Virus record (IMG/VR): IMGVR_UViG_3300042514_000542
Span: 142,591 to 206,590 of that record
Reading direction: 5' to 3' (one strand)
DNA: 64,000 bases
In this document: piece by piece, positions 3,574 to 62,309 of the stretch
Numbering within the stretch: position 1 is the stretch's first letter
Layout: each line of letters begins with the position of its first letter
Notes under the pieces: generated by a model
Told to the model about the DNA's origin: nothing
Seen by the model: only the letters and a program-made list of their open reading frames with translations
The model's database searches: none
Position numbers and translations under genes: made by a program

Positions 3574-3642
3574 ATAAATAATATCATATCGAATATATCT
3601 AGGTCAGGTAAGCACCGCCAACTAATAATGAAAAGAATTTAA

Positions 3643-5409
3643 ATGAGCTACTTAAAATATACATCAGGTGAGTCTTTCACTCTAAATTCCGAAGATTATT
3701 CTGGTTATTTTAGAGTAGTTGGTGATACTGCATTTTCCGGTAGAATTGGTGGGCTTGAACTAACACCAAAAGATACTTTTATGTCTAAATTATATATTGA
3801 TTTATATAATTTAGATACTACCTATAAAAATATACAAAATCTCAATAATGTATATGCAAATACCCTAGACACTCTAGATAAGTTGGGTATAGATAGAATA
3901 TTAGAATCCCTTCATAATAATAATAAAATTTGTTATAAATCATTAGTATTATCAAATCCAACGGTATTCAAATACGATGAAACTGGGGGATTCTTCTATG
4001 GTTTATCTGCGACTGATGAATATAATGATAAAATATATCCGAAAAGGGGTGTTGTTAATATCAATACGTTGTCTGACTCTGATTATTGGTCGTTTTTAGA
4101 TAAAATTACAACAGGACACCATTTAGTTGATACATATGAAAACTTTAAATATATTTGCACTGATGGATTTGTCACGTATACTCTATCCGGTAATTTTAAT
4201 GGGAATATTCCTCTAACAAAAATTTCAGAATACCCCAACGTTCCATATTACGATAAAATTTACCATATTCATCACGATATCGATGATGGTAGAATGTTTT
4301 TCGTGAAAAATGATTATATTGAAATTTATGACGCATCTAATTTTGAATTATGCGATAATCTAATACTAGTTGATAGAATTAGTCTTATTCCGACAACAAC
4401 AACTGAGCATATTTGGAACACTTTAGACGTTAACTGGAATGATTTCCAACAACTTTGGAATGTTCTATTCGATACTATCAATAATAATACTCCTGAAACT
4501 ATTAAAATCGGTAAAAATCTAAGAACTGGTATAAGTAGTGATCTAACAACACTTAACCTGTATAACAAATACTCGAATAAAATTCATAGGCAAATTAGTT
4601 TAGCTGAATTGGATATACAATCCGTGATTGATGTAGATATCAACTCCAATAGTGACGATATTTTGATTCTATACCAGAATAAAAATTCTGATGTAATGAT
4701 ATGCTTTATTGATATCACCACACCCAATGTGAAAAAACTATCTAAGTTGGAATCACTTTTTGGAACTACTTATAATATTAAATTCACAGAGTTTGATTCC
4801 AATGTATTCTATATTTGGAATAGTAATGGATATCAAACTAGAAATATATCGAATTCTACATACCCATCCGGTAGATTGGAGTTAAATGATTTAAAATATC
4901 CAAAGGATTACATCTGGAACACCACCGATGAAATTTGGAATTTCCTAAATCTTAGATGGGATGTTAATGGATCTCTGGCGAACAGATACAATAATTTAAA
5001 TACATCGGTGACTATATCAAATAATAAAATGTATATGTTACTGCACAATATTGGCAGATTATATGTTATGAATCAAACAATGGATGATAGATTCTACTCC
5101 AATATACCCCTAAATTTACAATCATTCTTCACAGAATCTACATGTTCTGAATCATCCATTGGTATATATCTAAATACAAATATTGCGAATATCGCAAAAG
5201 ATACATTGAACATACTGAGCAAATCTAATGGGAGTTTCGATATATACGAGAGATCCGTATTCTTGAAACAAATTGATGACTTTATTCTGGACACTAATAA
5301 CTTATACCTAAATGGTAATGAAAACATCAATATCACAAGCATTCAAAGGATTTTACTCTCTATCCTAAATATACAGAGTAAAATCTTACCCGTATCTATT
5401 GAAAATTAA
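3643..5409 (+). CDS. Virion structural protein with two Trp-heptad motifs
   Basis: 588 aa; IWNTLDVNWNDFQQLWN and IWNTTDEIWNFLNLRWD; structural context. Confidence 0.5.
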   Translation: MSYLKYTSGESFTLNSEDYSGYFRVVGDTAFSGRIGGLELTPKDTFMSKLYIDLYNLDTTYKNIQNLNNVYANTLDTLDKLGIDRILESLHNNNKICYKSLVLSNPTVFKYDETGGFFYGLSATDEYNDKIYPKRGVVNINTLSDSDYWSFLDKITTGHHLVDTYENFKYICTDGFVTYTLSGNFNGNIPLTKISEYPNVPYYDKIYHIHHDIDDGRMFFVKNDYIEIYDASNFELCDNLILVDRISLIPTTTTEHIWNTLDVNWNDFQQLWNVLFDTINNNTPETIKIGKNLRTGISSDLTTLNLYNKYSNKIHRQISLAELDIQSVIDVDINSNSDDILILYQNKNSDVMICFIDITTPNVKKLSKLESLFGTTYNIKFTEFDSNVFYIWNSNGYQTRNISNSTYPSGRLELNDLKYPKDYIWNTTDEIWNFLNLRWDVNGSLANRYNNLNTSVTISNNKMYMLLHNIGRLYVMNQTMDDRFYSNIPLNLQSFFTESTCSESSIGIYLNTNIANIAKDTLNILSKSNGSFDIYERSVFLKQIDDFILDTNNLYLNGNENINITSIQRILLSILNIQSKILPVSIEN

Positions 5410-5431
5410 ACAATCACGTTAAATAAACATA

Positions 5432-6253
5432 ATGAGTACTTTCACTAATCAATTCATTTTAAACACATACGGTGGTATATTACACTCAGATGGAGAGTTG
5501 AATATTTCCCAGAAATCGATCATGTATGACGGATTCGGTAACGAATCCGCATTAACATTGGGTCGAAAAAATAATGGGGCTAGTGTTAGTGGTAATTTAT
5601 CATCAACATCTTTAAATGTCGGACAATTAACTTTCCCGTCTCTTTCAAGTGATGTCAATAACGTGTTGATACAAAAGGCCGATGGAATTGTGGATTTTTC
5701 TGACACCATACCATCATCTCTACTCGCAGATCTAAACCCAAATCCAGAAAATGTATATAATACTATAAAGTCCATTACTGTAAATTCTAAAGGTCTTACG
5801 ACAAAAGTTGATACTTGGGGGAGTTCAAATAATACCATAACATCCACAACCTATAAAGAAAATGCTGGAACACCATTTTCAGTAGTCACCGTAACTGCCG
5901 ATGTATGGACAAAGGTGTTTTTAACGGACGCTATACCACCAGAAGATGTTTCTAGCGTTAAAGCTGTTATACTATACGTTGAACCTACAGGTAATTTAGC
6001 CGCATATAGAAAATCATATACGCTAGTTGCATCTCCAAATCAAAGTGATGTGTATCCAATATATCAAGTCATTGGTGGTGAAGATGCGGGGGGTGGAAAC
6101 GATACTTACGGTATAGGTGTTCAATGTTCCGTCCGTATTGGAGGAATTGGAACAAATTCAATATACATATACCTTAAAAACCCCATCACAAAAAGTAACT
6201 CCGATAATGCGACTTACTCATTTAATGTTCATTTAATAGCTTATCAACGATAA
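5432..6253 (+). CDS. Fibre-like virion protein
   Basis: SITVNSKGLTTKV fibre-type repeat; TAAATA late promoter 6 nt upstream. Confidence 0.5.
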   Translation: MSTFTNQFILNTYGGILHSDGELNISQKSIMYDGFGNESALTLGRKNNGASVSGNLSSTSLNVGQLTFPSLSSDVNNVLIQKADGIVDFSDTIPSSLLADLNPNPENVYNTIKSITVNSKGLTTKVDTWGSSNNTITSTTYKENAGTPFSVVTVTADVWTKVFLTDAIPPEDVSSVKAVILYVEPTGNLAAYRKSYTLVASPNQSDVYPIYQVIGGEDAGGGNDTYGIGVQCSVRIGGIGTNSIYIYLKNPITKSNSDNATYSFNVHLIAYQR

Positions 6254-6254
6254 T

Positions 6255-7277
6255 ATGCCAAATATAGAAATAGCTAAGTTAAAAACAAGAAGAGGCACGA
6301 ATAATCAAAGAAAACGTGTCATCTTTGACCAAGGGGAAATTGTATCTACCGTTGATACTAATAGATTATTCCTTGGAACCGGAACGTTGAGTGGCGGTGT
6401 TGTGATAGGTTCGAAAGTTCATCAACCTATCACTAATTATTCATCATTATCAAATATCGCAGCCGAAGTTGGTGATTTAGCATATGCTAATAATATATTT
6501 TACCAGTTAACGGCATCACCACCATCAAATATCAACAATTGGATGTCTACTGGAATTAAACTAGACAGTGGATTATTCTCGTATGATTCAGATAATACAC
6601 TTAGATTAAATCTATCCTCTCTATCGGCAGTGCATATCAATCCACTAACCGTATCGAATGGAATTAAGATATCTGGTGGGATTCTTCAAAGCAATTTTAA
6701 TACAAAATCTTTAGAAATTTCATCATATCAATTATCCCTAAAGGCTAATGGTATAGATGAAAGAGAGCTAAACTCGACAACTTTTGGTTACGGAATTAGT
6801 GGGGGATCAGGAACTAAAGTAGTTCTGGACGTAAATCCATCACAGTTTCGTTTCAATGGTGATACCCTAAATCTCACGAATTCTACATCCATATCCGCAG
6901 TAGATAATTCATCATTAATTCTAAGCTCTGGTGTAATATCAGTAAATAATAATGGGGCTTCTGGTAGTTATCAATGGCCAAGAATTGTAGTGGATACTTT
7001 CGGTAGAGTGACTACAGCAGAATCATCAATATTAGATGTTTTAACAGGTAATGCATCTCTATCAAGCTATAACCGTAATAATTCACTCTCCGCAATATAT
7101 AATGGTGATTCTATGGGATTATCATCTATAGCAATAACGAGATTTACTGCACTATCATCCGATGGAACAAGCATTATACATCTTTCATCTGCTGGGTTTA
7201 TAACATTCGAAGGAGGGACCACAACAAGGAGTGGAACTTCCGTTGGAAGATTCGCAATCCCAATTTATAGATATTAA
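6255..7277 (+). CDS. Tail fibre-like protein with an Mtd-N/hyaluronidase-type N-terminal domain
   Basis: RRGT...QGEIVSTVDTNRLFLGTG N-terminus; IVVDTFGRVTTA fibre repeat. Confidence 0.65.
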   Translation: MPNIEIAKLKTRRGTNNQRKRVIFDQGEIVSTVDTNRLFLGTGTLSGGVVIGSKVHQPITNYSSLSNIAAEVGDLAYANNIFYQLTASPPSNINNWMSTGIKLDSGLFSYDSDNTLRLNLSSLSAVHINPLTVSNGIKISGGILQSNFNTKSLEISSYQLSLKANGIDERELNSTTFGYGISGGSGTKVVLDVNPSQFRFNGDTLNLTNSTSISAVDNSSLILSSGVISVNNNGASGSYQWPRIVVDTFGRVTTAESSILDVLTGNASLSSYNRNNSLSAIYNGDSMGLSSIAITRFTALSSDGTSIIHLSSAGFITFEGGTTTRSGTSVGRFAIPIYRY

Positions 7278-7280
7278 TAT

Positions 7281-8141
7281 ATGGAAATTCTCAACAATAC
7301 AATTATTAAATTAATAGTCCGTCAAGGTGCAAATACTGATCGAAAGTATATTCTTTTGAATTCTGGCGAACCCGCATTTACGACAGATACTCATAGATTT
7401 TATGTAGGGACTGGTATATTGAGTGGTGGTGTTGTTGTTGGAAATAAATACCAAGGGTCTTCCACAGATGTTACTGGATTTACATCTGCTGTAAATGGAG
7501 ATGATGCATATGATTCCGATAAACACAAACTTTATAAAGTAATTAATGATACTGACACCACTCAACTCTCGAATTGGGAGTATGTTGGGGGTGTTTACTC
7601 TTCTGGTGATAATTATATTGAAATAAGTAGCGATAATCAGATATCTCTGAATGCGTTATCCGCCAATGCCTTATCTAATGACTTAGTGAAAGGTCCAATT
7701 ATCTTAGATTCTGGAAGAATCTCATTATCTGCGACAATTCCTTATCAATCAGTATCTACAAAAACTATAACTATATCTAATGGTTTAAAAGCCACTATTA
7801 ATGGATTAAGTGTTACTGGAAACGCAGTTAATGTGTTATCATCCAATCTAGTAGTATCAACCAAGCAATTATTTGCGAGATATAATGGTGTAACCCAAAC
7901 ACTGACAAACTATCAGAATATTTCTTCTGTTAACTGGTTATCAGCAGGTCATTATGTGTTCAATTTCGAACCAGTTCTCAGTAATTCCAATTATGTCCCC
8001 TTAACGCAAATAATTGGAATTAACGGTCTAGGATATCATTCTAGAGTTATATCAACAACCATTTCATCATGTCATGTGGTGATATTGAGTACTAATGAGG
8101 CAAAAACCGATGTAGATTTATCTCTATTGATTAATTATTAA
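7281..8141 (+). CDS. Tail fibre-like protein, paralogue of the preceding gene
   Basis: RQG...SGEPAFTTDTHRFYVGTGILSGGVVVGNK aligns by eye with the 6255 N-terminus; C-terminal AGHYVFNF...NYVPL fibre-tip pattern. Confidence 0.65.
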   Translation: MEILNNTIIKLIVRQGANTDRKYILLNSGEPAFTTDTHRFYVGTGILSGGVVVGNKYQGSSTDVTGFTSAVNGDDAYDSDKHKLYKVINDTDTTQLSNWEYVGGVYSSGDNYIEISSDNQISLNALSANALSNDLVKGPIILDSGRISLSATIPYQSVSTKTITISNGLKATINGLSVTGNAVNVLSSNLVVSTKQLFARYNGVTQTLTNYQNISSVNWLSAGHYVFNFEPVLSNSNYVPLTQIIGINGLGYHSRVISTTISSCHVVILSTNEAKTDVDLSLLINY

Positions 8142-8142
8142 T

Positions 8143-8862
8143 ATGTCATTCCCTTCCGATGTTTTATTACCAGTAAATGCGAAATATTTTGGAATTATAG
8201 AACCTGATTACGCATTCAACCCACATTGGGACTTAACTTGGAGTTTTTCATATGCATTGACTGGAACTGAGCATGGTATCTGTACTTTTCTCTGTGATAA
8301 TTCAACTGTAACATCACCACCCGGACACTATATTGGTTATGGTGGGCTAAGTGCGTCTAAATTTGTATTAGGTGTTGCGTTGGATTCAACTGGGCTTTTC
8401 GCATTATCTACTAATTACTCTTCAGGTGTCCCCCGTTCGCAAATAAAAAGAGATAGTCTCATTATAAGAGATCAAACCAATAATGTAATTTTTAATCAGT
8501 CGCTTTCTACACTGGACTCAACCTTTAACATAGCTACATCAGCGAAAGAATATAAGACAATTCGAATTCGCTACTCCAATGTGGGTAGGAAGATCTATAT
8601 AGACTATAAAATTGGCGATACTAAGTATATAAATCTCACTAGTATTAGTCATATTTCACTAGACACATCAACATACGAAAATCTTTATGTTGGTTTATCA
8701 TATTCGTCACCTATTTCAAGTAGTTCCATAACACCATCAAAAATATGGGTCAAGAACTTCCACATTCAAGGTAATATCGAAAACCCTACATATAATACAT
8801 TGGCATACACACCGATTTCATCAAATGTAGTTAATTCATTCTCGTCAATTAACATATTCTAA
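8143..8862 (+). CDS. Legume-lectin/ConA-like virion protein
   Basis: WSFSY...GICTF...LGVALDS...IRIRYS...YVGLSY...NFH pattern of L-type lectins. Confidence 0.55.
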   Translation: MSFPSDVLLPVNAKYFGIIEPDYAFNPHWDLTWSFSYALTGTEHGICTFLCDNSTVTSPPGHYIGYGGLSASKFVLGVALDSTGLFALSTNYSSGVPRSQIKRDSLIIRDQTNNVIFNQSLSTLDSTFNIATSAKEYKTIRIRYSNVGRKIYIDYKIGDTKYINLTSISHISLDTSTYENLYVGLSYSSPISSSSITPSKIWVKNFHIQGNIENPTYNTLAYTPISSNVVNSFSSINIF

Positions 8863-47622: not shown

Positions 47623-48237
47623 ATGTTAATAGACTTCAATATATTAAAAGATAAGTATGGTATCACCACACATGGAGTGATACATGTTGGTATGCATAAA
47701 GCAGAGGAATATCCAATTTATAAAAACTGTGGGGTGGAAGAAATTATTTTTGTAGAGGCTAACCGAGATTTGGCGCATGGGTGGGTGAATGATGATCCTC
47801 ATTGTCATGTAGTCCATGCTGCGGTTTCAGATAAAGAAGAAATTATTAAATTCCACATCACCAATAATGGTGAAAGTTCCTCAATTTTAGAGTTGGGTGA
47901 TCATGCTAAGATATATCCACATATTGTAAATGTTGATACTGTTGAAATGAAGACCACCACATTAGATACGATTATTGAAAGGGTTGGTGTTTATAAGTTC
48001 GTATGGAATGTTTTAAATTTGGACATTCAGGGAGCAGAACTCAAGGCTATGAAGGGGCTAACCAATTGGGATAGTATTGAAGCCGTCTTCACTGAAGTAA
48101 ACTATAGAGAGATGTATAAGGGGTGTGGATTGGAACCGGAAGTTACCAAGTTTTTGGAGGATAAGGGATTTGAAAAGGTTGAAGAAGATGATACTGGATG
48201 TGGGTGGGGGGACGCACTATATATTAAAAAGAAATGA
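47623..48237 (+). CDS. FkbM family methyltransferase
   Basis: IHVGMHKAEE, VEAN, SSSIL, LDIQGAEL, WGDALY. Confidence 0.9.
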   Translation: MLIDFNILKDKYGITTHGVIHVGMHKAEEYPIYKNCGVEEIIFVEANRDLAHGWVNDDPHCHVVHAAVSDKEEIIKFHITNNGESSSILELGDHAKIYPHIVNVDTVEMKTTTLDTIIERVGVYKFVWNVLNLDIQGAELKAMKGLTNWDSIEAVFTEVNYREMYKGCGLEPEVTKFLEDKGFEKVEEDDTGCGWGDALYIKKK

Positions 48238-48992
48238 AAAATAAATGTTACGTTGATGTTAGTGGCGGTATTGGAAATCAGCTATTTAAGGTGGCTAATG
48301 GATATGCTTATAGCCAAAGGTATAATTTAGAGTTGGTTATAGATCCAACTAATTGGACAGCATCTCAAGGAACTAGTCCAATTCTATACCAATCCAATAT
48401 ATTTAAAAATTTTAACATTATCCCTAGAGGTGAAACTACAGAAATTCATGAAATATCCTTTAATTTTATGGAACTACCGAAATATGATTGGTCATATGGT
48501 GATATATCTCTACATGGTGGTTTTCAATCTCTGAAATATTTTGAAGATTATAAGGATGAGTTTATCAGTCTACTATGTTTACCGAAGGTAGATACATCAT
48601 TTATATCATCGGATGCTAATATAGCGTTTCATATTAGATTTGGTGATTATCAACATTATCCCAAAATATTTGGAGATATTACTAACTATTTCCATAAACA
48701 ATTTGAGAAGTTTTCTCCAGATTTTCAGATTAATGTATTTTCGGATTCTCCAGAATTAGTATTGAATAAATTCCGAAACTATAAATTTAATCTAATAAAA
48801 ACATCATCCGAGTTGAATGACTTGACTTTACTTTCTCTACATGATAGGATAGTTTGTAGTAACTCGACATTCTCTTGGTGGGCATCATTACTGGGTGCGA
48901 AAAAAGAATTGATTATCGTACCCGATAAATGGTTATTAGATCGAGATTGTAAAGATATATATTACGAAGGAATGATAAAAAATGAGTTTTAA
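48234..48992 (+). CDS. GT11 alpha-1,2-fucosyltransferase-like protein
   Basis: GGIGNQLF, FQSLKYF, HIRFGDY, FSD, NSTFSWW. Confidence 0.9.
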   Translation: MKNKCYVDVSGGIGNQLFKVANGYAYSQRYNLELVIDPTNWTASQGTSPILYQSNIFKNFNIIPRGETTEIHEISFNFMELPKYDWSYGDISLHGGFQSLKYFEDYKDEFISLLCLPKVDTSFISSDANIAFHIRFGDYQHYPKIFGDITNYFHKQFEKFSPDFQINVFSDSPELVLNKFRNYKFNLIKTSSELNDLTLLSLHDRIVCSNSTFSWWASLLGAKKELIIVPDKWLLDRDCKDIYYEGMIKNEF

Positions 48993-53907: not shown

Positions 53908-55138
53908 TATGAATTTAAAAAAATATAAACGAATTAGGAAATTAGTTAACGGTTTAATGACTACAACATACGTTCCCAAAAAAGAAAATAGAAATATGAC
54001 AACCTTAAAAAAATATTTAAATCACTTTATGTGGTATGATTTATCTAACGATGATCTTTTAAACATCATTCCATCACCAGTATTCGATATCGAGTATCCT
54101 TCAAATTTTGAAACACATTTTGGTAAAATTCCAACGGTATTTTTAAAAATAGATGATAAAATTCTACCTTTGGAAAACTTCAACAAATTTCAAAAATATC
54201 TATTATCGCAAGGATTTGATTTAATGGAATGCGGGTATGAGACTTTCAAATATATTCATTTTGAAAGAAAAATACTTATTAGTGGTGATGCCACTGATAT
54301 GTCTATCGATCTTGAAGAGGATGAAGAGGATGACTATCCCAGAGGAAATCGATCAATCGAATCCGAAACTATTTATATAAATTTACTCCCAACTCTTGAA
54401 AATAAAGAGTTTATCGAAAAAGTGATGAAAAAAATCCATTCATTTCTTATTGATGTTTCGACTCAAATCGATAAGTTCTACATGATTGCTCAGGGTCAAA
54501 ATGGACTGTTTACACAGAAGACTAAATTTAAATCTATACCTGTGGAAGATGATAGATTCGATTTATTCTATGGTAGAGAATTTCCACATGAAAAAATGCA
54601 AAGGTTTGTATGGGATAAAACCGATAACCTTATGCTACTTCACGGAGATCCCGGCACAGGTAAGTCTAATTATATTAAACATCTTATAACTAGTTCTAAG
54701 AAAAAAGTTATATATATCCCACCATCTATGCTTAGTGTCATCTCCGATCCGGGATTTGTAACATTTATGATGAGTAACAAGGATAGTATTCTTCTGATTG
54801 AAGATGCCGAAGAAGTATTATCAGTGGATAGAAATTCGGCAACCAATAACCTATTAGGATTAACTGACGGATTTTTAAAAGATGCGTTGGGGCTGAAGGT
54901 TATTGCCACATTCAATTGTGATATCGGTAAAATTGACCCTGCTTTGAAAAGAAAAGGTCGTATGTATTTTGAATACAAGTTTGATAAATTAAGTGTTGAT
55001 GAGTGTAGAACATTGGCTACTCACTTAAAACTAGATAAAGAGATTAGAGATCCTATGACACTTGCGGAATTTTTTAGTGTTGAGGAAAACACAATAGAGG
55101 ATTCGTTTAAAGAACGTTTTATAGGGTTTGCGACATGA
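53900..55138 (+). CDS. AAA+ ATPase
   Basis: LLHGDPGTGKS, LLIEDAE, TFN, IDPALKRKGR, IGF tail. Confidence 0.88.
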   Translation: MNNMNLKKYKRIRKLVNGLMTTTYVPKKENRNMTTLKKYLNHFMWYDLSNDDLLNIIPSPVFDIEYPSNFETHFGKIPTVFLKIDDKILPLENFNKFQKYLLSQGFDLMECGYETFKYIHFERKILISGDATDMSIDLEEDEEDDYPRGNRSIESETIYINLLPTLENKEFIEKVMKKIHSFLIDVSTQIDKFYMIAQGQNGLFTQKTKFKSIPVEDDRFDLFYGREFPHEKMQRFVWDKTDNLMLLHGDPGTGKSNYIKHLITSSKKKVIYIPPSMLSVISDPGFVTFMMSNKDSILLIEDAEEVLSVDRNSATNNLLGLTDGFLKDALGLKVIATFNCDIGKIDPALKRKGRMYFEYKFDKLSVDECRTLATHLKLDKEIRDPMTLAEFFSVEENTIEDSFKERFIGFAT

Positions 55139-55157
55139 TATATAGTTAAATAGATAT

Positions 55158-56252
55158 GTGAAAACATATTCCTATTTCCGAGAAACCCTTAACACCCTCA
55201 CACAATTCACCGCAGCGTTCGATGATTGTGTAGTGTGGAGGTATGATAAAAATTTCGAGAAGAAGGAAAAAATCAATGTTCGATATGTATTTGGTCCAAA
55301 AAATAGGGTATTGTACGACATAGTTAATCAGTCTAAGAATATCACTCTTCCTGTTATTTCAATTGAGCAGACTAACGTTAAAAGAGATTCTAGTCGAATC
55401 CAATTTAAGGATCAGAAGATAACCCGAAGAAATCTTAATGATGATAGTATTTCAAGGGTTCCAAGTCCCATACCAGTCACCATGGATCTTAATGTATCCA
55501 TGGTAGCTAATTATAAAGAGGATATTGATCAAATAGCTGCAAATATTCTACAGTGGTTTAATCCATATATAATTATATCTTGTAAGATTCCAGAAGAATT
55601 TGGAATGGATTTTATAGATGAAATCAGAACCGAGGCTACTTGGGGTGGTTCAGTGGATTACGAAAACCCAACGAATATCGCGGCATCGGACAAATATAAA
55701 ATCGTTGGGAATACCACTTTTAATGTTAAGGGTTGGATATTCCCAGCATTAGAAACACCCCAAGCACCTATTTACGTTGTAAATACAAATTTTGTATCGG
55801 TATCGAGCGGTTCCATACTAAATGGATATGATGATTTCTGGTCATTATCCGCTAATAATACGACGGATTCGATCTTAATCTCCGCATTCCCAGAATTTAC
55901 AAATTATTTTATAAATGGTCGCCCATATGATGAGTTAATTTTAAACGATATCAATGATAAAACATTTACATTTTACGGGAAAAGATTTGATTTTAATAAC
56001 ACTTGGTATCTAAGTTCAAATGTAGTAATACCCGAATTAGTATATACCGAAATAGACACCGCTAAATTTCCTACCATATCTGCTTATAAATTACCTGATA
56101 GTGTTATCACCACTGTAAATGATAATATAGTATCAATTAGTTTAAGTTCGGGGTATTTGAATTTGAGTGGCGGATATGTTTTTATCACAGCCAATGATGC
56201 GGGATGGGGTCTGTCAACTGGAATTTTTATAAACTCTGATAATTTATTTTAA
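55158..56252 (+). CDS. gp15: Tail completion/sheath stabiliser (gp15-like) with a C-terminal extension
   Basis: F...FDD, YVFGPK, ITLP.IS, DQI...IL.WFNP, FNVKGWIFP. Confidence 0.8.
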   Translation: MKTYSYFRETLNTLTQFTAAFDDCVVWRYDKNFEKKEKINVRYVFGPKNRVLYDIVNQSKNITLPVISIEQTNVKRDSSRIQFKDQKITRRNLNDDSISRVPSPIPVTMDLNVSMVANYKEDIDQIAANILQWFNPYIIISCKIPEEFGMDFIDEIRTEATWGGSVDYENPTNIAASDKYKIVGNTTFNVKGWIFPALETPQAPIYVVNTNFVSVSSGSILNGYDDFWSLSANNTTDSILISAFPEFTNYFINGRPYDELILNDINDKTFTFYGKRFDFNNTWYLSSNVVIPELVYTEIDTAKFPTISAYKLPDSVITTVNDNIVSISLSSGYLNLSGGYVFITANDAGWGLSTGIFINSDNLF

Positions 56253-56312
56253 ATGGGATTATAATTTTCTACAATGGTCAGAAAATTATATATAATTAAG
56301 TTAAATAATTAT

Positions 56313-57416
56313 ATGGCAATAGATTTAGGCGATAATCCAGTGGGAATCCCCCCCACAGCAGGTGAGGCGACCCAAATTAGAACGGTTTTAGGGTTGGGTA
56401 ATGTTAACAATACATCTGATCTAGATAAACCGATCTCGACAGCCACACTATCGGCACTTAATTTAAAAGAGACTCCCGCTGGAGCAGCCGCGCAAATCGC
56501 AGCATCCGCCCTTACTGACGCACAAGTGGGCAACCAAGTCGGTAACGAGCTTGTGGCTACTTTTTCAGCGTTGGCCGCTGTATCCACACTAAATCCCGGC
56601 TGTCTGGTGTTGGCCACTTCTCGTCCGAATGCTGCTAACGTCATAATCAGGACATCAACTGGCTACGCTCGACCTATTCTCGCTGCCACTGGAGCATTGT
56701 CCACTCAGGTTGGGACAGGGGTTGTTGGCGCACAGTTAACAATCCCCATTGCTGCTGGTGCTGCCATGCGTGCAATGTCGGTAATCAGTGTTGCGAGCGG
56801 TGGCTCTGTCCGTAGTGGTAACATCACTGACATTAATATTTCTGATGTGGGCTTACACAGTATGCCCACATCGCACTTAACAGCTTTGACTGCGCTGACT
56901 GTTATTAACAGTAGGTTGCCCAGCTTTGACGGGTCTGGGCTTACTTCGCTCACAATCCTAGCCTTAAACAGCAACAATCAACTCCGCTCCTTTACCAAGG
57001 GAACAGGATTAGAATCACTGTTGAGCCTAACGTTAAATTCTAATAGACTGACAACGTTTTCGGGAGTGGGACTTAGCGTATTAAGAAATCTCTTTTTAAA
57101 TAATAACCAACTCACAACTTTTGACGCTACTGGATTAGGTGAGCTTAGGACATTAAACGTTTCAAACAACACAACCCTGAATAGCTTTGTTTTGTCCAGT
57201 GTCCCAACCCTAGTTTCTCTTCGTAATGAGGATATTTCGACTTTTGCAGTGGTTGCAAATGGTTGCTCTTTAAGTGCGCAAGCAATCAATGACTTCTTCA
57301 CTGCACTCCCGCCAGCAACAAACGGAGCAGCAACTCTAGTCTTCAACGGAAACCCAGGAAGTGCAACTGCCAATGCATCCATTGCCACCTCCAAAGGTTA
57401 CACTGTATCCCTCTAA
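56313..57416 (+). CDS. Fibre-anchored leucine-rich-repeat protein
   Basis: LGLGNVNNTSDLDKPISTA fibre repeat; at least four LxxLxLxxN repeats; elevated GC; TAAATA 5 nt before MAIDLG. Confidence 0.7.
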   Translation: MAIDLGDNPVGIPPTAGEATQIRTVLGLGNVNNTSDLDKPISTATLSALNLKETPAGAAAQIAASALTDAQVGNQVGNELVATFSALAAVSTLNPGCLVLATSRPNAANVIIRTSTGYARPILAATGALSTQVGTGVVGAQLTIPIAAGAAMRAMSVISVASGGSVRSGNITDINISDVGLHSMPTSHLTALTALTVINSRLPSFDGSGLTSLTILALNSNNQLRSFTKGTGLESLLSLTLNSNRLTTFSGVGLSVLRNLFLNNNQLTTFDATGLGELRTLNVSNNTTLNSFVLSSVPTLVSLRNEDISTFAVVANGCSLSAQAINDFFTALPPATNGAATLVFNGNPGSATANASIATSKGYTVSL

Positions 57417-57427
57417 AATAAATCATC

Positions 57428-58327
57428 ATGCAAACTAAAATCACCATCGCGCTTGGAGCGTCACACGCCGCAGAGGTATCCAGACTCTCCACCTCCATTC
57501 CTGAGTTGCTGATCGTAGATGAGGAAAACCCTCTTTATGAAGAGCGACATGATGATGTCACGGTCAATGCGCTACTCACCAAGTCTGGCTTTGGCAAGTT
57601 CCTACCAGAAGACAGAGATGGAGCAGTTTTCCTTTGCGACACCGACCTCCAGCCTGTGGGTGGCGGAAACCCATTCGACACCTTCCCCGATATGGGTGAT
57701 GCCGACATCGCCTTTGTTGCATATCCCGGACGATTCTTTTTCCCACCTACCGAAAGCTACCAAGCAGCGAGCTACGCTGTCCTTGGGAAAAAGCTCAACT
57801 CAGGAATGGTCTGGTTCAAGAATCACGAAACAGCAAAAGCTATCTCTGCTGCATGGGAGGCAAAATATCTAGAGGATATTTCCGAGGGTGGTGCTATGGC
57901 TGACATGACTCATAAAAATGATGAGGTATCGCTGATGGCGGTGCTTGTTTCTGGCGACTGGAACTACCACTGGCTGGAGCAAGTCTGGAATAACCAATGG
58001 GAACCTAGCGAGAACGACATCATTCGTCACTCGCACGATGTCCCGACTACATCCGCGCCACAAAGCGAACCAACGCCTGTCCCTGAATCCCTCGCCAACT
58101 GGCGCGTTAAGGCGGTTCTTGACATACAGGGACTTACATCAACTGTGGATGCTGCCATAGATGCTATGGTAGACAGTAATGAAAAAATTATTATTTCAAG
58201 AGCATGGAACGGTAATGGTGATGTCCTTCGTCACTCCCCAACCGTTAATTCTTTCATGGCTATTCTCGGCCTCACCGATGCTCAGGTGGATGATATGTTC
58301 CGTTTGGCTGATACTTTCAATCCGTAA
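57428..58327 (+). CDS. GT-A (GT8-like) domain fused to a tail-fibre-assembly-like C-terminal domain
   Basis: FLCDTD, LNSGMVWF, DEVSL, WN, IRH; then VPESLANWRVKAVL...W...LGLTDAQVDDMFRLA. Confidence 0.6.
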   Translation: MQTKITIALGASHAAEVSRLSTSIPELLIVDEENPLYEERHDDVTVNALLTKSGFGKFLPEDRDGAVFLCDTDLQPVGGGNPFDTFPDMGDADIAFVAYPGRFFFPPTESYQAASYAVLGKKLNSGMVWFKNHETAKAISAAWEAKYLEDISEGGAMADMTHKNDEVSLMAVLVSGDWNYHWLEQVWNNQWEPSENDIIRHSHDVPTTSAPQSEPTPVPESLANWRVKAVLDIQGLTSTVDAAIDAMVDSNEKIIISRAWNGNGDVLRHSPTVNSFMAILGLTDAQVDDMFRLADTFNP

Positions 58328-58491
58328 GTTCTTTATCTTTTTTGGCCAAATCATAAGATCCTTTGAGAGTTTTCGACGTAAATGTCGATGGATAGATATT
58401 ATCAACACAATTTATGTATTACCACTAATCAATAATGGGTGAATATATGTAGTATATGGTTGTTATTTGACAATTCATACTAAATACTTAA

Positions 58492-60318
58492 ATGGCAGGT
58501 ATTCAGAATAATCCTAATAATAGGAGTAATTTATCCAGAGACGGTAAATCTGGAATGTATGATAGGTCGATGCAGACTTATCTCAAAAACCGTGTTCCAT
58601 ATAATTATAGTGTTTTAGATTCGGATGAATCCAAAAATACAAAATATAAATATTTCCAAAAAGTTGGAATGCGTAGACCAGAGGCTCTTGCTAAGAACTC
58701 TGTAACTCTCAATAATCCATATAATAACACAGCATTCTCTGCAATCGAAAGAGATAAGACTTTCGGTGATATTATGTATGCAAGCGCATCTGAAGATAAA
58801 CCGGGACGCTTGAGGGATTATAGATCTATGGCAGCATTTTCCGAAATTGCTGATGCTCTAGATGAAATTTGTGATGAGACAATTAATCCAGATGAAAATG
58901 ATGAGATTGTCCTTTTAAAATTTAAAAATACGGATTTGGAGTCGGATAAGAAAAGCGAAATCCAAGAAGAATGGTATAGGTATATTGAATATTACGACTT
59001 ACATAATAATGGATGGCAATACTTTAGACAATTCTTAACTGAGGGTGAATTGTTTTTTGAACAAATAATTCATGATGAATTTACCAATGAGGGTGTTTTA
59101 GGCATTATTAATATGCCAGCAGACCTCATTGATCCGGTATATTCAAATATTCAAAATATGTTGGTTAAGGGATTCCTATATCAAAAACCAATCTTCGATC
59201 CCAATGATCCCAAGAAAGTGGAAAGATATGAACCAATTCCTTTAGAGGAAAACCAAGTAGTTTATATTAATAATTCTGCATATAATGACACAAAGGATTT
59301 CATTATACCATTTATAGAAAATTGTCGTAGAGCTTATAGACAATTATCGATGATCGAAGATGCTGTAGTTATTCATAGAATGGTTCATGCACCTCTAAGG
59401 TTTGTATTTAATGTTGACGTTGGTACACTTCCTGTACCACAAGCAGAATCATACTTGAGAAAATTACAAGCACAGTATTGGTCATCTAAAACATTCGACT
59501 CTGACCAAGGGGATATTGTTAAAAAATATAGCCCACAATCAACATTGGATAGTTATTGGTTCGCCAAGAGACAAGGACAGGAACCGACCACAGTTAGTGA
59601 AATCGGTGGAACTCCGGGTCTTGGAGAGCTTCATGACTTGATGTTCTTCATCAAAAAACTTTACAGATCGCTTAAGGTTCCGACTTCAAGATTAGACCCC
59701 GAAGATTCGTTTCGTGATGGGACTGATATTCTTAGAGAAGAATTAAAGTTTGCCACAATGATCATGAGACAACAGAAGAAATTTGCTTCTGGCCTCAAGA
59801 GAGGATTTATAACACACCTCAAACTTCGTCATATGTTTGAGCAATATGATTTAACAGAACAAAATATTAATGTTGTATTCAATGCACCATCAAATTTCTA
59901 CGATCTTAGAAATAATCAGAAGATGGAACTTAAGGTTAATTCTTATAATAATCTTATGTCAACTCAAAAGGTTTCTGATACATATGCCAAGAAAAAAGTT
60001 CTTGGTTGGAAAGACAAAGATATTCTAGCAGATCGTGAATTGCGTAGAAAAGACGCAGAATTAGATTGGGAATTACAACAGATTATGGCAATGGGTCCAA
60101 GCTGGAAAGAGCAGTTATTACAACAAGCCCAAGGTGGCGCACCCGAAGCTGGTGATGATCTAGGTGGTATGGGCGGCGGAATGGGTGCTGGCGGTGCTGG
60201 AGGTTTACCACCTTCGTTCGGTGGTGGTGAAGCAGCAATTGGTGGTGATGAAACACTTCCACCTAATGCTGGTGTTGCGCCAGAAATGCCTATGGTTCCA
60301 GAAGAACCTCCAGCTTAA
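58492..60318 (+). CDS. gp20: Portal protein (gp20-like)
   Basis: YRSMA, ALDEI, QLSMIEDAVVIHR..APLR.VFNVDVG, LYRSLKVPTSRL, REELKF. Confidence 0.96.
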   Translation: MAGIQNNPNNRSNLSRDGKSGMYDRSMQTYLKNRVPYNYSVLDSDESKNTKYKYFQKVGMRRPEALAKNSVTLNNPYNNTAFSAIERDKTFGDIMYASASEDKPGRLRDYRSMAAFSEIADALDEICDETINPDENDEIVLLKFKNTDLESDKKSEIQEEWYRYIEYYDLHNNGWQYFRQFLTEGELFFEQIIHDEFTNEGVLGIINMPADLIDPVYSNIQNMLVKGFLYQKPIFDPNDPKKVERYEPIPLEENQVVYINNSAYNDTKDFIIPFIENCRRAYRQLSMIEDAVVIHRMVHAPLRFVFNVDVGTLPVPQAESYLRKLQAQYWSSKTFDSDQGDIVKKYSPQSTLDSYWFAKRQGQEPTTVSEIGGTPGLGELHDLMFFIKKLYRSLKVPTSRLDPEDSFRDGTDILREELKFATMIMRQQKKFASGLKRGFITHLKLRHMFEQYDLTEQNINVVFNAPSNFYDLRNNQKMELKVNSYNNLMSTQKVSDTYAKKKVLGWKDKDILADRELRRKDAELDWELQQIMAMGPSWKEQLLQQAQGGAPEAGDDLGGMGGGMGAGGAGGLPPSFGGGEAAIGGDETLPPNAGVAPEMPMVPEEPPA

Positions 60319-60608
60319 TCACAAAAGCTTACACAGTTGAACGCTGAACTATAATAATACTTAGTTCCAGAATTCGATTGTAAATTTAACCCAGAATCAC
60401 TCGGAACATTACATTCTAGAAAATAATATTCAGTCGGTATATTGGTTGTAACTTGGGGATAATTATCTTCTTGTCCCCATAAAATGAATTCATTCGCAGA
60501 TATACGGTAATATCCAGTGGATTTATTGGAGTTTATATTCACCCCTGATGTCGATGGAACACCACACGACAGTTCGTAATAAACGGAGCCAGAATTACTT
60601 TCATACAT
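60315..60608 (-). CDS. Small late protein with an internal Cys-containing repeat
   Basis: YYELSCGVPSTSGVNINSN and YYFLECNVPSDSGLNLQSN; TAAATA 5 nt upstream. Confidence 0.65.
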   Translation of the reverse strand: MYESNSGSVYYELSCGVPSTSGVNINSNKSTGYYRISANEFILWGQEDNYPQVTTNIPTEYYFLECNVPSDSGLNLQSNSGTKYYYSSAFNCVSFCD

Positions 60609-60636
60609 AATATTATTTAATAACTAAATAACTAAT

Positions 60637-61788
60637 ATGAGTTCACTTTGCACAATTACGCCAGTTTCGGCGTTTATGTCTACAAATCTAAGTTCGAAAA
60701 TTGACTGTTTTCAAGAATTGGGTGCTAGAATTCTTAGAATGCTTGGACACCCTATGATCAATGTTGAGCTACATCCTGATCAATTATATGACTCTATTTC
60801 AATGGCGTGTGAGTTTTTCACAAAGTATGCAGGACACACTAAGGAGTATTTGGTATTCAACTCTGATCTCTACGAAAGAGATAAAGGTATTAGATTGGAC
60901 TATTTATATACAGTCTCGAATACTGGGTTTACATTATCTCAAAAACTGAATGATCAAACTATTCCAAATCCAGACTTTGAATTGAAATTTAGAGAGAATT
61001 TATATGTGTCGTTATCAGACATCTCATATAATCATTTTTTAACTTCATCTGCATTATCTGCGTCGATTCCAACTGATGGTATCTCAACAATGCAGATATT
61101 AGATGAAAGTTCTTTTGCTCAATTAACCGCTTTTGATGCTAATTTGAGAAACATGTTTCGCATTTCACCTATGAAACCCTTCAATGTTCAATGTGAACAG
61201 GTGGAAAATGTGAGAACTATTAATAACATGTTTGATTATGATATTATGGATTATCGTAAAGTTATAGATGTTATTGATTTTGAAGAGGGTTCAAGTTCTG
61301 GTATTAGTCAATTATTTTCGATGGAACAGACCTTAGCTCAACAAACTTTCTATAGTTATGCTATGGGTAACTTTGGATTCGATTTGCTGTCTTGGCATAC
61401 TGTTAAAGATTGGCAAGATACCCGTGAGAAACTTTTGGCGACTCGTAGAGATATACATTTTGATAATAGAACGCAGTATTTGAAGTTTTATCCACAACCT
61501 AAAGATACGTCATCATTTGTGGGGGTGTTAGAATGCTATGTGGAAAGACCATTGAGAGATATTATTAAAGAAAAATGGGTTCTAGATTATTCTATCGCAC
61601 TATCTAAAGTTATGTGGGGAAGGATTCTAACAAAAATTAATGGTGTGACTATGCTTGGTGGCGGGACTCTAAATGGTGCTGAAATTTTAGCAGAAGGAAA
61701 TGCTGATAAAGAACGTCTTGAAACGATGCTGATTGAAGGCACGGGTGGGACAGCTTCGTATGAACCTATCATGATGTTCATAAGGTAA
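60637..61788 (+). CDS. gp13: Neck protein (gp13-like)
   Basis: ILRMLGHPMINVEL..DQ; WVLDY..A..K..WG..L.K..G..MLGGGTLNG. Confidence 0.9.
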   Translation: MSSLCTITPVSAFMSTNLSSKIDCFQELGARILRMLGHPMINVELHPDQLYDSISMACEFFTKYAGHTKEYLVFNSDLYERDKGIRLDYLYTVSNTGFTLSQKLNDQTIPNPDFELKFRENLYVSLSDISYNHFLTSSALSASIPTDGISTMQILDESSFAQLTAFDANLRNMFRISPMKPFNVQCEQVENVRTINNMFDYDIMDYRKVIDVIDFEEGSSSGISQLFSMEQTLAQQTFYSYAMGNFGFDLLSWHTVKDWQDTREKLLATRRDIHFDNRTQYLKFYPQPKDTSSFVGVLECYVERPLRDIIKEKWVLDYSIALSKVMWGRILTKINGVTMLGGGTLNGAEILAEGNADKERLETMLIEGTGGTASYEPIMMFIR

Positions 61789-61793
61789 ATTTT

Positions 61794-62309
61794 ATGATAT
61801 ACCCAAAACAAATTCCCAAATTTGTAAAAGATGTTCAATATCAGGAATTACATCCGAAAGTTGGAAAATATTTATATAGATATAAGACATTAGATGATAT
61901 CGAGTTGGTATTTCATAATTCATTAATACCACAAAATCAAACTATAACATTTAGTGATGAACAAGGTCGAATCTGGTTGACCATCACACACAAATCTATA
62001 ATAATATCCAAGAATTATGCTTGGAATGGATGTTCACCAAAAAGATGGTGGCTGGTTTGGTGGGGAACTCCCGATTTTGAGGAAACCCTTATTGCGTCAT
62101 TATTTCATGACGCATTAGTTCAGTTTGTATACACTGAACATTTTCCCTTGTCGAGATATATATGCGACAACATATTCAAAAATATATTATATATGAAAAA
62201 ATTTAAATTTGTAGATATATATTATATTGGAGTTAGAGTAGGTAGTGAAGTATTACCAATCAATAAATATGTTGGGAAATCCAACTTGACAACACTATCT
62301 CAAGACTAA
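61794..62309 (+). CDS. DUF1353-like protein
   Basis: YAWNGCS, ASLFHDAL, YYIGVR. Confidence 0.6.
   Translation: MIYPKQIPKFVKDVQYQELHPKVGKYLYRYKTLDDIELVFHNSLIPQNQTITFSDEQGRIWLTITHKSIIISKNYAWNGCSPKRWWLVWWGTPDFEETLIASLFHDALVQFVYTEHFPLSRYICDNIFKNILYMKKFKFVDIYYIGVRVGSEVLPINKYVGKSNLTTLSQD

Follow-up and report, generated by a model that had tools for sequence, protein, structure and literature searches.

A high-GC gene pair encoding an LRR fibre-like protein and a glycosyltransferase-like partner at the variable gp15-gp20 junction of an uncultured T4-like virus

Introduction

What are two genes of high GC content doing between the gene for the gp15 tail sheath stabiliser and the portal gene of an uncultured T4-like virus, and where did they come from? 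Tailed phages owe their host range to swappable tips. Pairs consisting of a fibre gene and a downstream assembly or adhesin gene are exchanged between phages, as in lambda stf-tfa, Mu S-U, P2 H-G and T4 gp37-gp38, and T4-type genomes have hyperplastic (variable) regions. The LRR solenoid found in one of the two proteins studied here is rare on phages, and we know of none that has been characterised as a receptor-binding protein.

The window analysed here is a stretch of 64,000 nt of IMG/VR record IMGVR_UViG_3300042514_000542 (record positions 142,591 to 206,590), from a genome of 206.6 kb. A preliminary description of this DNA considered the two genes to be a recently acquired, swappable adhesion module and left the second of them unanalysed. 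In our reading, the pair is probably an occupied allele of a hypervariable gp15-gp20 fibre locus in an uncultured clade of T4-like myoviruses. It would represent a two-gene host-recognition module from a high-GC phage gene pool, in which the second gene is a fibre-tailoring partner.

Results

The gp15-gp20 locus and its TAAATA motif

As described previously, a two-gene cassette lies between gp15 and the portal gene. It comprises two + strand ORFs (56274/56313-57416 and 57428-58327), and both flanking genes were identified by Pfam matches (Table 1). The reading frames called for no alternative genetic code. The TAAATA hexamer in front of gene 1 favours position 56313 over 56274 as its start. 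TAAATA was located at −11 to −14 of the ATG in 19 of 76 genes, structural genes included, against about 3% expected, and it also precedes the portal (−11) and gp13 (−12) genes. The hexamer, which had been called a native promoter, is thus a genuine motif of this genome. The canonical T4 late box TATAAATA was not enriched (13 matches against 12.4 expected); identification as a canonical T4 late promoter was therefore dropped, and TAAATA is treated as a putative promoter. Sigma-70-like promoters and terminators showed no excess over shuffled sequences. The position of gene 1 behind the genome's own TAAATA suggests that both genes would be expressed alongside the structural genes.

The variable region extends from about 56208 to about 58457. 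According to the junction comparison, the last 15 or so codons of gp15 (from about 56208, past A-N-D-A-G-W) are unlike those of relatives with an empty site. The right boundary is the conserved pre-portal element, which overlaps the gp15 stop codon in several of the empty-site relatives. Direct or inverted repeats at the flanks, such as would point to mobility, were represented by short, chance-level matches only, and no further copies of the module, the C-domain of gene 2 or the fibre motif of gene 1 were detected elsewhere in the same genome.

Table 1. Positions in the window of the features at the gp15-gp20 locus.
Feature	Position	Strand	Evidence
gp15 tail sheath stabiliser, left flank	55158..56252	+	PF16724 E 7e-17, phrog_227
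TAAATA hexamer, 11 nt before gene 1 ATG 56313	56302..56307	+	genome-wide motif
Gene 1 (P0001), 367 aa, LRR fibre-like protein	56313..57416	+	
Exchange unit, stretch differing between the window and L081	56500..58180 (about)	.	sliding identity
LRR solenoid, gene 1 residues 181-293	56853..57191	+	LRR_4, repeat register, fold matches
Gene 2 (P0081), 299 aa: GT-A domain, Pro/Ser/Thr-rich linker and phrog_6034 C-domain	57428..58327	+	
GT-A (GT8 / Nucleotid_trans-like) domain, residues 1-205, DxD D71-T-D73	57428..58042	+	
Five-helix conserved C-domain, residues 212-299 (88 residues), phrog_6034 family	58061..58324	+	
Non-coding spacer, low GC, 3' of gene 2, identical in L081	58328..58457	+	
Conserved pre-portal element: T-rich box, then CTAAATA 11 nt before portal ATG	58458..58491	+	
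gp20 portal protein (T4-type), right flank	58492..60318	+	PF07230 E 3e-89, phrog_213

The GC island

The region 56313-58327 is the strongest GC island of the genome. Its GC content is 0.483 as against 0.336 across the remaining window, about 7 SD over all other 2-kb windows, and the top 1-kb GC peak genome-wide (206,590 bases) falls in it (0.496). Recounting of the two 60-mers sampled previously gave exactly the same values, 34/60 GC at position 57661 and 18/60 at position 481. The rise is real, as had been stated, but its onset is at about 56.31 kb, that is, at the start codon, and not at about 56.45 kb. Third-codon GC was 0.41-0.53 in the cassette genes and 0.27-0.31 in the flanks, which marks the cassette as foreign by this measure.

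It is very improbable, and largely refuted, that the island is an artefact, either of chimeric metagenome assembly or of a GC rise caused purely by Ala/Gly-rich protein composition. The record is indeed a metagenome assembly, and gene 1, with 44% of its residues A, G, T or S, has a composition that raises GC in the first two codon positions. The difference in third-codon GC speaks against composition as the sole cause. The junctions are supported by independent contigs: a separately catalogued contig of 4,409 bases, recorded for two samples, carries the same four genes at identical spacing, and both outer junctions are common to the related contig L081 at about 100% identity. The 100%-identical blocks common to the window and L081 could partly be strain-level assembly chimeras. 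Two other relatives bear an island at the same site (see below), and gene 1 stands behind the native TAAATA with an N-terminus common to same-site genes, all of which argues against an artefact.

Relatives, origin and exchange of the module

Among 80 portal relatives fetched from IMG/VR, none carried the two cassette genes. The gp15-portal junction was empty in about half of them, and the others contained different fibre-like genes with two recurring N-terminal types. The cassette is therefore not conserved in this interval, as the preliminary description had led one to expect. The first 35-45 residues or so of gene 1 are common to the same-site genes in L017 and L018 (32-37% identity over 80 residues), and the distal parts of these proteins are unrelated. 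The N-terminal 45 or so residues are thus not foreign to the clade. In L088/L089 the same site is occupied by another high-GC island, consisting of genes for a BspA-type LRR protein, a sulfotransferase and a C-domain protein. In L002-L004, a 129-base gap aligns weakly with the junctions of the window, and a deletion scar is not claimed there.

Neither the cassette nor either of its genes had a match in the cultured-phage database, whether as DNA or as protein, and the portal protein is at most 28% identical to those of cultured phages. The nearest homologous modules were found in phage contigs of 55-58% GC, with 80-82% nucleotide identity and, for gene 2, 81% amino acid identity. Of the two sources of GC content considered earlier, the host or another phage of that host, the best matches point to other phages, which may or may not share the host. 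Synonymous divergence between the cassette and the sampled high-GC homologues is large (dS about 1-2), which indicates old divergence; "recent" fits the swaps among relatives and not the first import. The module genes are under purifying selection (dN/dS 0.06-0.12).

Such a swap was seen by sliding identity against L081. The flanks are about 100% identical on both sides, and the LRR tip and the N-domain of the partner differ. The exchange unit is smaller than the whole cassette, and the crossovers fall within conserved parts of both genes, namely the N-terminal/beta-sandwich part of gene 1 and the C-domain of gene 2, which indicates that the LRR tip and the enzyme domain travel together. Of the earlier idea of a recently acquired, swappable module, the swap, the foreign third-codon GC and the high-GC homologues stand. 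The divergence from the sampled high-GC homologues is old, the unit that moves covers only about 56500-58180, and the N-terminal segment is not foreign to the clade.

Gene 1 encodes an LRR fibre-like protein

The product of gene 1 is made up of an N-terminal segment (residues 1-65), a helix (69-87), a beta-sandwich (98-177), the LRRs and a cap (311-367). The N-terminal segment was modelled as disordered with low confidence. The phage fibre repeat noted previously lies at residues 26-42, and its matches are to tail-fibre and minor-tail PHROGs (E 1e-8 to 2e-4). The match to phrog_13892 (minor tail protein, E 1e-8) covers residues 28-76, and weaker ones were obtained with phrog_35419 and phrog_24919 (tail fiber protein); it is the motif region alone that matches.

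About six LRRs were recognised. Five of them, each 21-23 residues long, are clear and lie at 192-300, and there are partial ones besides. They show the tandem arrangement of 20-30 residues with an LxxLxLxxN core required for the Pfam LRR clan. The LRR_4 score was 31.8 bits against a cut-off of 27 when residues 180-367 were used alone, and 26.7 bits, just below the cut-off, with the whole protein. The solenoid was modelled with a pTM of 0.74 and pLDDT mostly of 83-95 across the repeats. The model had 46 PDB matches at E ≤ 0.001, every listed one being an LRR protein; they include the Nogo receptor, VLR, internalin, and the IpaH and SspH1 LRRs.

The LRRs had been called internalin-like. Their existence is well supported by these data, but LGR4, the Nogo receptor and VLRs were matched at least as well as the internalins. 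InlC, InlB, InlF and InlJ were matched weakly in sequence or fold and through the LRR alone, and InlC (E 3.8e-4) was weaker than LGR4. Like Listeria internalins, gene 1 has LRRs of the bacterial type with a period of about 22 residues. Unlike in internalins, the domain at 98-177 precedes the LRRs instead of following them, no internalin-specific part stood out in the matches, and the N-terminus as read has no signal peptide. Gene 1 is not placed among the internalins.

The single-chain model is a monomeric solenoid with neither a coiled coil nor a beta-helix shaft. The lack of a trimeric shaft is unusual for a fibre and counts against our reading of the locus.

It was also considered that neither protein is structural, the LRR protein being an intracellular binder of host proteins (takeover or anti-defence) and gene 2 a glycosyltransferase acting on a host target, much as bacterial LRR effectors and glucosylating enzymes do. 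The solved LRR folds nearest to that of gene 1 bind proteins, those of IpaH and SspH1 among them, the GT-A neighbours of gene 2 include protein-modifying enzymes, and the monomeric model of gene 1 would fit such a role. We judge this quite improbable, given that the N-terminal motif of gene 1 matches tail-fibre and minor-tail PHROGs, that in relatives this site within the neck/portal module is taken by fibre-like genes sharing that N-terminus, that the partner family sits 3' of annotated tail fibre genes, and that TAAATA is common to gene 1, portal and gp13.

Gene 2 contains a glycosyltransferase-like domain

The N-terminal domain of gene 2 resembles GT-A glycosyltransferases by several comparisons. 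In the Atlas, its features scored 0.98 to PF03407 clusters and its model had a TM of 0.79 over 191 residues to GT8 clusters. VIA-align gave Z of 7.4 to 6.8 to GT6 and PBCV-1 A64R, and its top rows were GT-A transferases and related nucleotidyltransferases. Foldseek returned nothing against the PDB at E ≤ 0.001 with the gene 2 model; its weak rows were all GT-A and were taken as a consistent trend only. The DxD motif directly follows a strand (67-70) and is kept in 5/5 GT-type homologues. The model of this domain is of middling quality (pLDDT about 55-75), and the gene 2 model as a whole has no predicted membrane segment. Pfam had no family at E ≤ 5 for residues 1-205, so the domain is filed as GT-A-like and not as a member of PF03407 or PF01501. 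The PDB sequence search with gene 2 gave nothing above chance. The results suggest that the N-domain is a GT-A-like glycosyltransferase with a putative enzymatic role.

The C-domain belongs to a family that accompanies fibre genes

Residues 205-299 of gene 2 match the HMM of phrog_6034, a family of unknown function (E 1.5e-15, profile positions 75-162 of 164). The C-domain has a mean identity of 87% across 15 proteins, a dN/dS of 0.06-0.08 and a pLDDT of about 80. The right-hand crossover of the swaps falls within it. The family contains at least 1,915 sequence clusters at E ≤ 1e-3, and its genes lie directly 3' of tail-fibre genes in many podo-, sipho- and myovirus-type genomes.

A C-domain gene directly follows an LRR-family gene on seven contig sets, namely the window, L081, L084/L085, L090, L096, L097 and the L082 relative that has the 783-aa gene call. 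In L091, the gene just upstream ends with the same cap as the gene 1 LRR family, and in L087 the C-domain gene lies 3' of a collagen/LamG tail fibre. In Rhizobium phage RHph_I40 and in Caulobacter phage Percy, the gene annotated as tail fiber has a weak homologue of the C-domain behind it. The fibres accompanied in this way (LRR, BspA-LRR, collagen-LamG) have no common domain, which argues against simple fibre-specific docking.

C-domains were found fused to three unrelated types of transferase, GT8-like, Glyco_tranf_2_4 (E 5e-12) and sulfotransferase-like. For the fused form of the last type (P0068) the only Pfam match was sub-threshold (E 0.0018), and its identity as a sulfotransferase was dropped; the separate gene in L088 has a Sulfotransfer_3 match. 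The repeated fusion to unrelated transferases suggests chemical tailoring of fibres or of receptors.

With the C-domain profile, the search of bacterial and archaeal genomes gave one marginal match of 24 residues, the JGI metagenome contigs gave none, IMG/VR gave the single locus L087, and the PDB sequence search gave nothing above chance. Pfam held no family, tail fibre assembly (Tfa / gp38 type) included, for either half of gene 2; with assembly proteins of that type it has in common only its place behind the fibre gene. XkdW-like (PF09636) appeared through one Atlas structural neighbour cluster (TM 0.82), in which XkdW makes up 13% of members, and had no Pfam match. Complex prediction for the LRR protein and the C-domain scored 0.00, which is evidence neither way on binding.

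Discussion

The arrangement of the locus suggests how the module might work. The N-terminus of gene 1 (about 45 residues) would anchor a small fibre-like protein to the virion, and the distal LRR part would bind a ligand on the host surface; the adhesion function and the type of receptor are both putative. Gene 2 would act within the infected cell, as the cytoplasm is where nucleotide-sugar donors are found. There its C-domain may serve as a fibre-directed adaptor or chaperone-like domain while the GT domain glycosylates the fibre tip. We infer these three steps of the partner from domain content and gene position. Homologous recombination would drive the evolution of the module, with the LRR tip and the enzyme domain moving together.

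The main alternative to fibre tailoring is an enzyme directed at the host. Gene 1 would still be a virion adhesin, but the transferase of gene 2 would modify glycans or receptor precursors of the host envelope and so block superinfection or the sticking of progeny to debris; enzyme and LRR tip would travel together because they are aimed at one receptor. The joint exchange of enzyme domain and tip agrees with this, as does the pairing of different tips with different enzymes (GT8-like, sulfotransferase-like or none), and there is ample precedent for phage glycosyltransferases changing the surface antigens of hosts (summarised in PMC12619734). Co-transfer is, however, also accounted for by plain physical linkage. 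The known serotype-converting enzymes are mostly from temperate phages and usually membrane proteins, unlike the gene 2 model, and the conserved C-domain family is tied to fibre genes by position. We regard a host-directed enzyme as unlikely and prefer fibre tailoring.

The module resembles the classical pairs (stf-tfa, S-U, H-G and gp37-gp38) in that a fibre gene with a conserved N-terminal and a variable distal part is followed by a small partner gene, and recombination changes the tip. It differs from them in that the tip is an LRR solenoid and not a trimeric beta-structure, and in that the partner has no Pfam assembly-family match, has its conserved part at the C-terminus and is fused to a glycosyltransferase. 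As in the hyperplastic regions of T4-type genomes, there is an insertion hotspot between core genes, with cargo of foreign composition that varies among relatives. Unlike those regions, this hotspot is inside the neck/portal module and dedicated to fibre-like genes, and the searches around it revealed neither flanking repeats nor a stem-loop cassette.

Virus-encoded GT-A enzymes near structural genes are also found in mycobacteriophages, in which capsid and tail tube are glycosylated by phage glycosyltransferases (Freeman et al. 2023, as cited in PMC12619734), and in PBCV-1 A64R (PDB 2p6w), which ranks among the best structural neighbours of the gene 2 domain (Z 6.8). The enzyme described here differs in being known from its gene alone, in its fusion to a domain family that accompanies fibres and in its location beside a fibre tip instead of a capsid gene.

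Gene 2 offers a testable function for the large phrog_6034 family. Tentatively, and with considerable doubt, the C-domain might be a general adaptor that takes tailoring enzymes to nascent tail fibres; to date it has been seen with glycosyltransferases (GT8-like and GT2-like) and with sulfotransferases. In that case, many phages would add sugars or sulfate to their own receptor-binding tips and exchange tip and enzyme as one recombination unit, even across very different GC contents. If the tailoring model is true, phage-host recognition would include a widespread layer, the glycosylation or sulfation of fibres, that has been overlooked.

The locus is a natural example of tip exchange, in a clade without a cultured member among its close relatives, for which the DNA reveals both breakpoints (about 56500 and 58180) together with conserved homology arms and the high-GC donor pool. 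LRR tips had been called unusual on phage fibres, and they are indeed rare on candidate host-recognition proteins, yet reported. LRR domains of the Goslar DUF7941-LRR proteins were proposed to take part in phage host recognition (10.64898/2026.04.21.720040), and in a Vibrio phage a two-ORF insertion in the tail module includes an LRR-like protein with an HHpred probability of 10% (PMC10945359). In both cases, as in gene 1, a phage-specific attachment module at the N-terminus precedes the LRR domain, and in the Vibrio phage, too, the two-ORF insertion separates close relatives. Our case differs in its N-terminal module and its phage family, its donor pool and breakpoints are traceable, and its LRR assignment, compared with that in the Vibrio phage, is strong.

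Composition and start signal of the module

The window covers the terminal 64 kb of the virus record (206,590 bases, rated complete) of a T4-type myovirus with a GC content of 0.35, whose portal shares no more than 28% identity with that of any cultured phage. Gene 1, encoding an LRR fibre-like protein, and gene 2, its partner, form a module on the plus strand in the order XPD-like helicase, AAA ATPase, gp15, gene 1, gene 2, gp20 and gp13, with a 97-aa minus-strand ORF between the last two.

Features of the module and its neighbourhood, with identity to the related contig L081
Feature	Position	Strand	Remark
gp15, tail sheath stabiliser	55158-56252	+	
Gene 1	56313-57416	+	
Gene 1, N-terminal segment	residues 1-65		low confidence in AlphaFold model
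Gene 1, helix	residues 69-87		AlphaFold model
Gene 1, beta-sandwich	residues 98-177		AlphaFold model
Gene 1, LRR solenoid	residues 181-293		21-23-residue repeats; AlphaFold model
Gene 1, capping domain	residues 311-367		AlphaFold model
Gene 2	57428-58327	+	
Gene 2, GT-A glycosyltransferase-like domain	residues 1-205		
Gene 2, five-helix domain (C-domain)	residues 212-299		phrog_6034; pLDDT ~80
gp20, portal	58492-60318	+	
97-aa ORF	60315-60608	-	also kept in L081
171-aa gene	61794-62309		phrog_1158, tail assembly chaperone-like; missing in L081
Compared with L081	51300-54790		~80% identity
Compared with L081	54795-56500		~100% identity
Compared with L081	56500-57000		identity drops from 87% to 58%
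Compared with L081	~57000-58100		unalignable
Compared with L081	58197-60790		~100% identity
Compared with L081	60800-61790		~80% identity

The GC content of 56313-58327 was 0.483 against 0.336 in the remaining window; all other 2-kb windows had 0.379 or less, and no 1-kb peak in the entire genome was higher in GC than that of the module. The sharp GC rise reported in the preliminary description was thus reproduced, and the two 60-mers sampled there contained exactly 34/60 and 18/60 GC. Third-codon GC was 0.41 in gene 1, 0.50 in gene 2 and 0.53 in the gene 2 enzyme domain, against 0.27-0.31 in the helicase, ATPase, gp15, portal and gp13 genes, so amino-acid composition alone does not account for the excess. 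A local peak of 0.50 at 60050-60318 comes from a Gly/Ala/Pro-rich low-complexity tail of ~70 residues at the portal C-terminus and is not foreign DNA. Four weaker peaks (0.44-0.47) lie outside the window, at 1501-3750 (covering a 1,037-aa ORF), 7001-8250 (a 483-aa ORF), 47751-48750 and 136001-137000 of the whole genome record; no relation of these four to the module was found.

The hexamer TAAATA is located 11 nt upstream of ATG 56313 (56302-56307). It occurs 11-14 nt 5' of the ATG in 19 of the 76 window genes, on both strands, where ~3% was expected, and these genes include portal (58481-58486) and gp13 (before 60637). This places a native signal ahead of gene 1, as had been proposed, and favours 56313 over the upstream ATG 56274 as its start codon. 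The T4 late box in its classical form, TATAAATA, showed no enrichment, being present in the window at chance level. The spacing of TAAATA is too short for a T4-type late promoter plus a Shine-Dalgarno leader; the hexamer may be a mark of late mRNAs that are leaderless or nearly so, or may be a translation signal.

Domain content of the two proteins

The gene 1 protein has 367 aa (AlphaFold model pTM 0.74). Its N-terminal motif matched tail-fibre and minor-tail PHROGs and its LRRs, with the domain scanned alone, scored above the Pfam cut-off, confirming that a fibre motif and LRRs are joined in one gene. The LRRs resemble in fold those of Nogo receptor, VLR, internalin and IpaH. About 28 homologues from metagenomes have in common the beta-sandwich, LRRs in variable number and one of several cap types (the C-terminal part), and their N-termini are unlike one another.

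Residues 1-205 of the gene 2 protein (299 aa) fell among viral Nucleotid_trans and GT8 clusters of a protein atlas (features 0.98; TM 0.79 over 191 residues). GT-A enzymes ranked top in an exhaustive structural scan (Z 7.4 to 6.8), with the capsid-glycosylating A64R of PBCV-1 among the top rows, and the central strand is followed by a DxD motif (D71-T-D73) that all five homologues of GT type retain. No Pfam HMM matched residues 1-205, so the domain is named GT-A-like without a named family.

The C-domain had a mean identity of 87% among 15 proteins with unrelated N-terminal parts and shows strong purifying selection (dN/dS 0.06-0.08 at dS ~2). Its profile matched 1,915 sequence clusters at E<=1e-3; the best 150 were mostly proteins of 125-175 residues with the domain C-terminal. 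A minority of C-domain proteins carry a fused GT8-like, Glyco_tranf_2_4 (P0173, E 5e-12) or sulfotransferase-like domain. On seven contig sets, an LRR-family gene is directly followed by a C-domain gene. The gene upstream of the C-domain gene ends in the same cap as the LRR family on contig L091, and on L087 it is a tail fibre that has collagen repeats and a lectin-like end. In Rhizobium phage RHph_I40 and Caulobacter phage Percy, weak homologues occur immediately 3' of the gene annotated as tail fiber. This repeated position indicates that the C-domain family accompanies fibre genes in phages of different morphotypes.

Occupancy of the gp15-portal site

The window's portal has at least 80 related loci in IMG/VR. 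None of the 80 relatives carried genes 1 and 2, so the cassette is not conserved in the gp15-gp20 interval. Among the 76 loci holding both gp15 and portal, about half had merely 33-130 bases between them, including the closest IMG/VR relatives (portals 82-94% identical). The others had 0.35-5.5 kb, often with large fibre-like ORFs and, in several, raised GC. The gp15-portal site is a hotspot. The variable region extends from the last ~15 gp15 codons (~56208) to ~58457, and its right edge is a T-rich box plus CTAAATA upstream of the portal gene, conserved in all relatives and overlapping the gp15 stop codon in several with an empty site.

The large ORFs at the site start with one of two recurring N-termini. 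That of gene 1 is also found there in L017 and L018, and is thus a start common to genes at the site; from this recurrence in sequence we read it as the part that would attach to the virion. Two further low-GC T4-like phages have similar high-GC islands. One (L088/L089) has three genes at the gp15-portal site, encoding a BspA-type LRR protein, Sulfotransfer_3 and a C-domain protein of 168 aa; the other (L090) has a family LRR protein and a 154-aa C-domain protein near the terminase gene. The L088 island (3099-5507) has a GC of 0.54 vs ~0.40, and L089 is a 172-kb T4-like contig; their BspA-type protein carries the other recurring N-terminus, and enzyme and C-domain are separate genes.

Exchange within the module

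L081, a 210.9-kb contig from a different sample, has the same gene order as the window. The identity steps between them delimit a 6-kb block with gp15, module and portal that is common to two phages otherwise differing by 20%. This block (54795-60790) comprises the end of the AAA ATPase gene, gp15, the module ends, portal, the 97-aa ORF and the start of gp13, at ~100% identity. Within it the LRR tip, its cap and the gene 2 N-domain were replaced; one crossover falls in the beta-sandwich part of gene 1, which is conserved, and the other in the C-domain. In this sense the module is swappable, as first suggested. The L081 cap differs, and the partner there, 142 aa long, joins a small N-domain to the same C-domain (93% identical). 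The block reflects either a recent transfer between diverged phages or strain-chimera assemblies. The sharp steps from 100% to 80% could come partly from assemblers switching between co-occurring strains, which bears on the details of the nested mosaic but leaves the existence of the module unaffected. The junctions are well supported, if indirectly: a 4,409-base contig catalogued on its own (two samples) encodes an LRR protein identical to that of gene 1 and has all four genes with unchanged spacing, and both outer junctions also occur in L081.

Origin of the module

For the distal part of the module, the closest relatives are on phage contigs of 55-58% GC. Window 57276-58323 was 79-82% identical in DNA to L082, L083 and L091, and the gene 2 protein was 81% identical to P0064 of a 192-kb contig; on a near-identical contig, P0064 is preceded by a 783-aa LRR protein within a tail-fibre region. 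A second high-GC phage type (L084/L085) encodes a 427-aa LRR protein, a sulfotransferase-like C-domain protein and then lysis genes. The same phage type (L084 and L085, 1-3250) also encodes a giant ~6,600-aa polyvalent protein with ParB, Zeta-toxin, helicase and ART domains, ~3.7 kb upstream of that LRR pair.

Third-codon GC of the module was intermediate, 0.40-0.53 vs 0.63-0.70 in the high-GC phages, and the synonymous distance to their sampled homologues was large (dS ~1). Of the recent acquisition first proposed, the foreign composition and the homologues in high-GC phages are supported; the large dS means that either import from the sampled donors is not of recent date or the actual donor has not been sampled. 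It had been suggested that the GC may reflect the host or another phage of that host. No real C-domain homologue was found in 185,579 bacterial and archaeal species genomes, which points to other phages and not to host DNA. T4-like phages are often far below their hosts in GC, so the low-GC myoviruses and the high-GC phages could share a high-GC host.

Proposed working of the module

We consider it reasonably probable, on the whole, that the site is occupied by a host-recognition module of an LRR fibre and its partner. Gene 1 would be mounted on the virion through its N-terminus, and its LRR face or cap may bind a host surface ligand. Since gene 1 sits among the neck genes gp15, gp20 and gp13, a collar or whisker position is as plausible as the baseplate. 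The context is a poor fit to both proteins being non-structural effectors, which we regard as unlikely. Gene 2 would work in the cytoplasm, with its supply of nucleotide sugars; the C-domain may steer it to the fibre or aid fibre assembly, and the enzyme domain would glycosylate the fibre tip. The enzyme might instead modify the host receptor; within the module reading, tailoring of the fibre seems about twice as probable as this.

The module follows the same logic of exchange among phages as known pairs of fibre and partner genes, and the same logic as the variable regions of T4-type genomes. Unlike in these, the tip is an LRR solenoid; unlike in known pairs, the partner is a member of an uncharacterised family, conserved in its C-terminal part, and carries a transferase fusion. 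The position between gp15 and the portal gene also sets the locus apart from known T4-type variable regions. LRR domains on phage host-recognition proteins have been proposed earlier (10.64898/2026.04.21.720040; PMC10945359). Work cited in PMC12619734, and PDB 2p6w, concern virion glycosylation known in mycobacteriophages and chloroviruses.

Variation downstream of the portal gene

The portal-gp13 interval also varied among the portal relatives, from ~0.2 to ~4 kb, and in L016 it contained a stretch (5071-5286) resembling the gene 1 cap (46% identity, 74 residues). The 97-aa ORF in this interval consists of two similar Tyr/Ser/Asn-rich halves and has its own TAAATA at -11. The place of the 171-aa gene, just after gp13, is taken in L081 by the start of a 1,333-aa protein with a K1-lyase-like domain, and looks like a second variable fibre locus.
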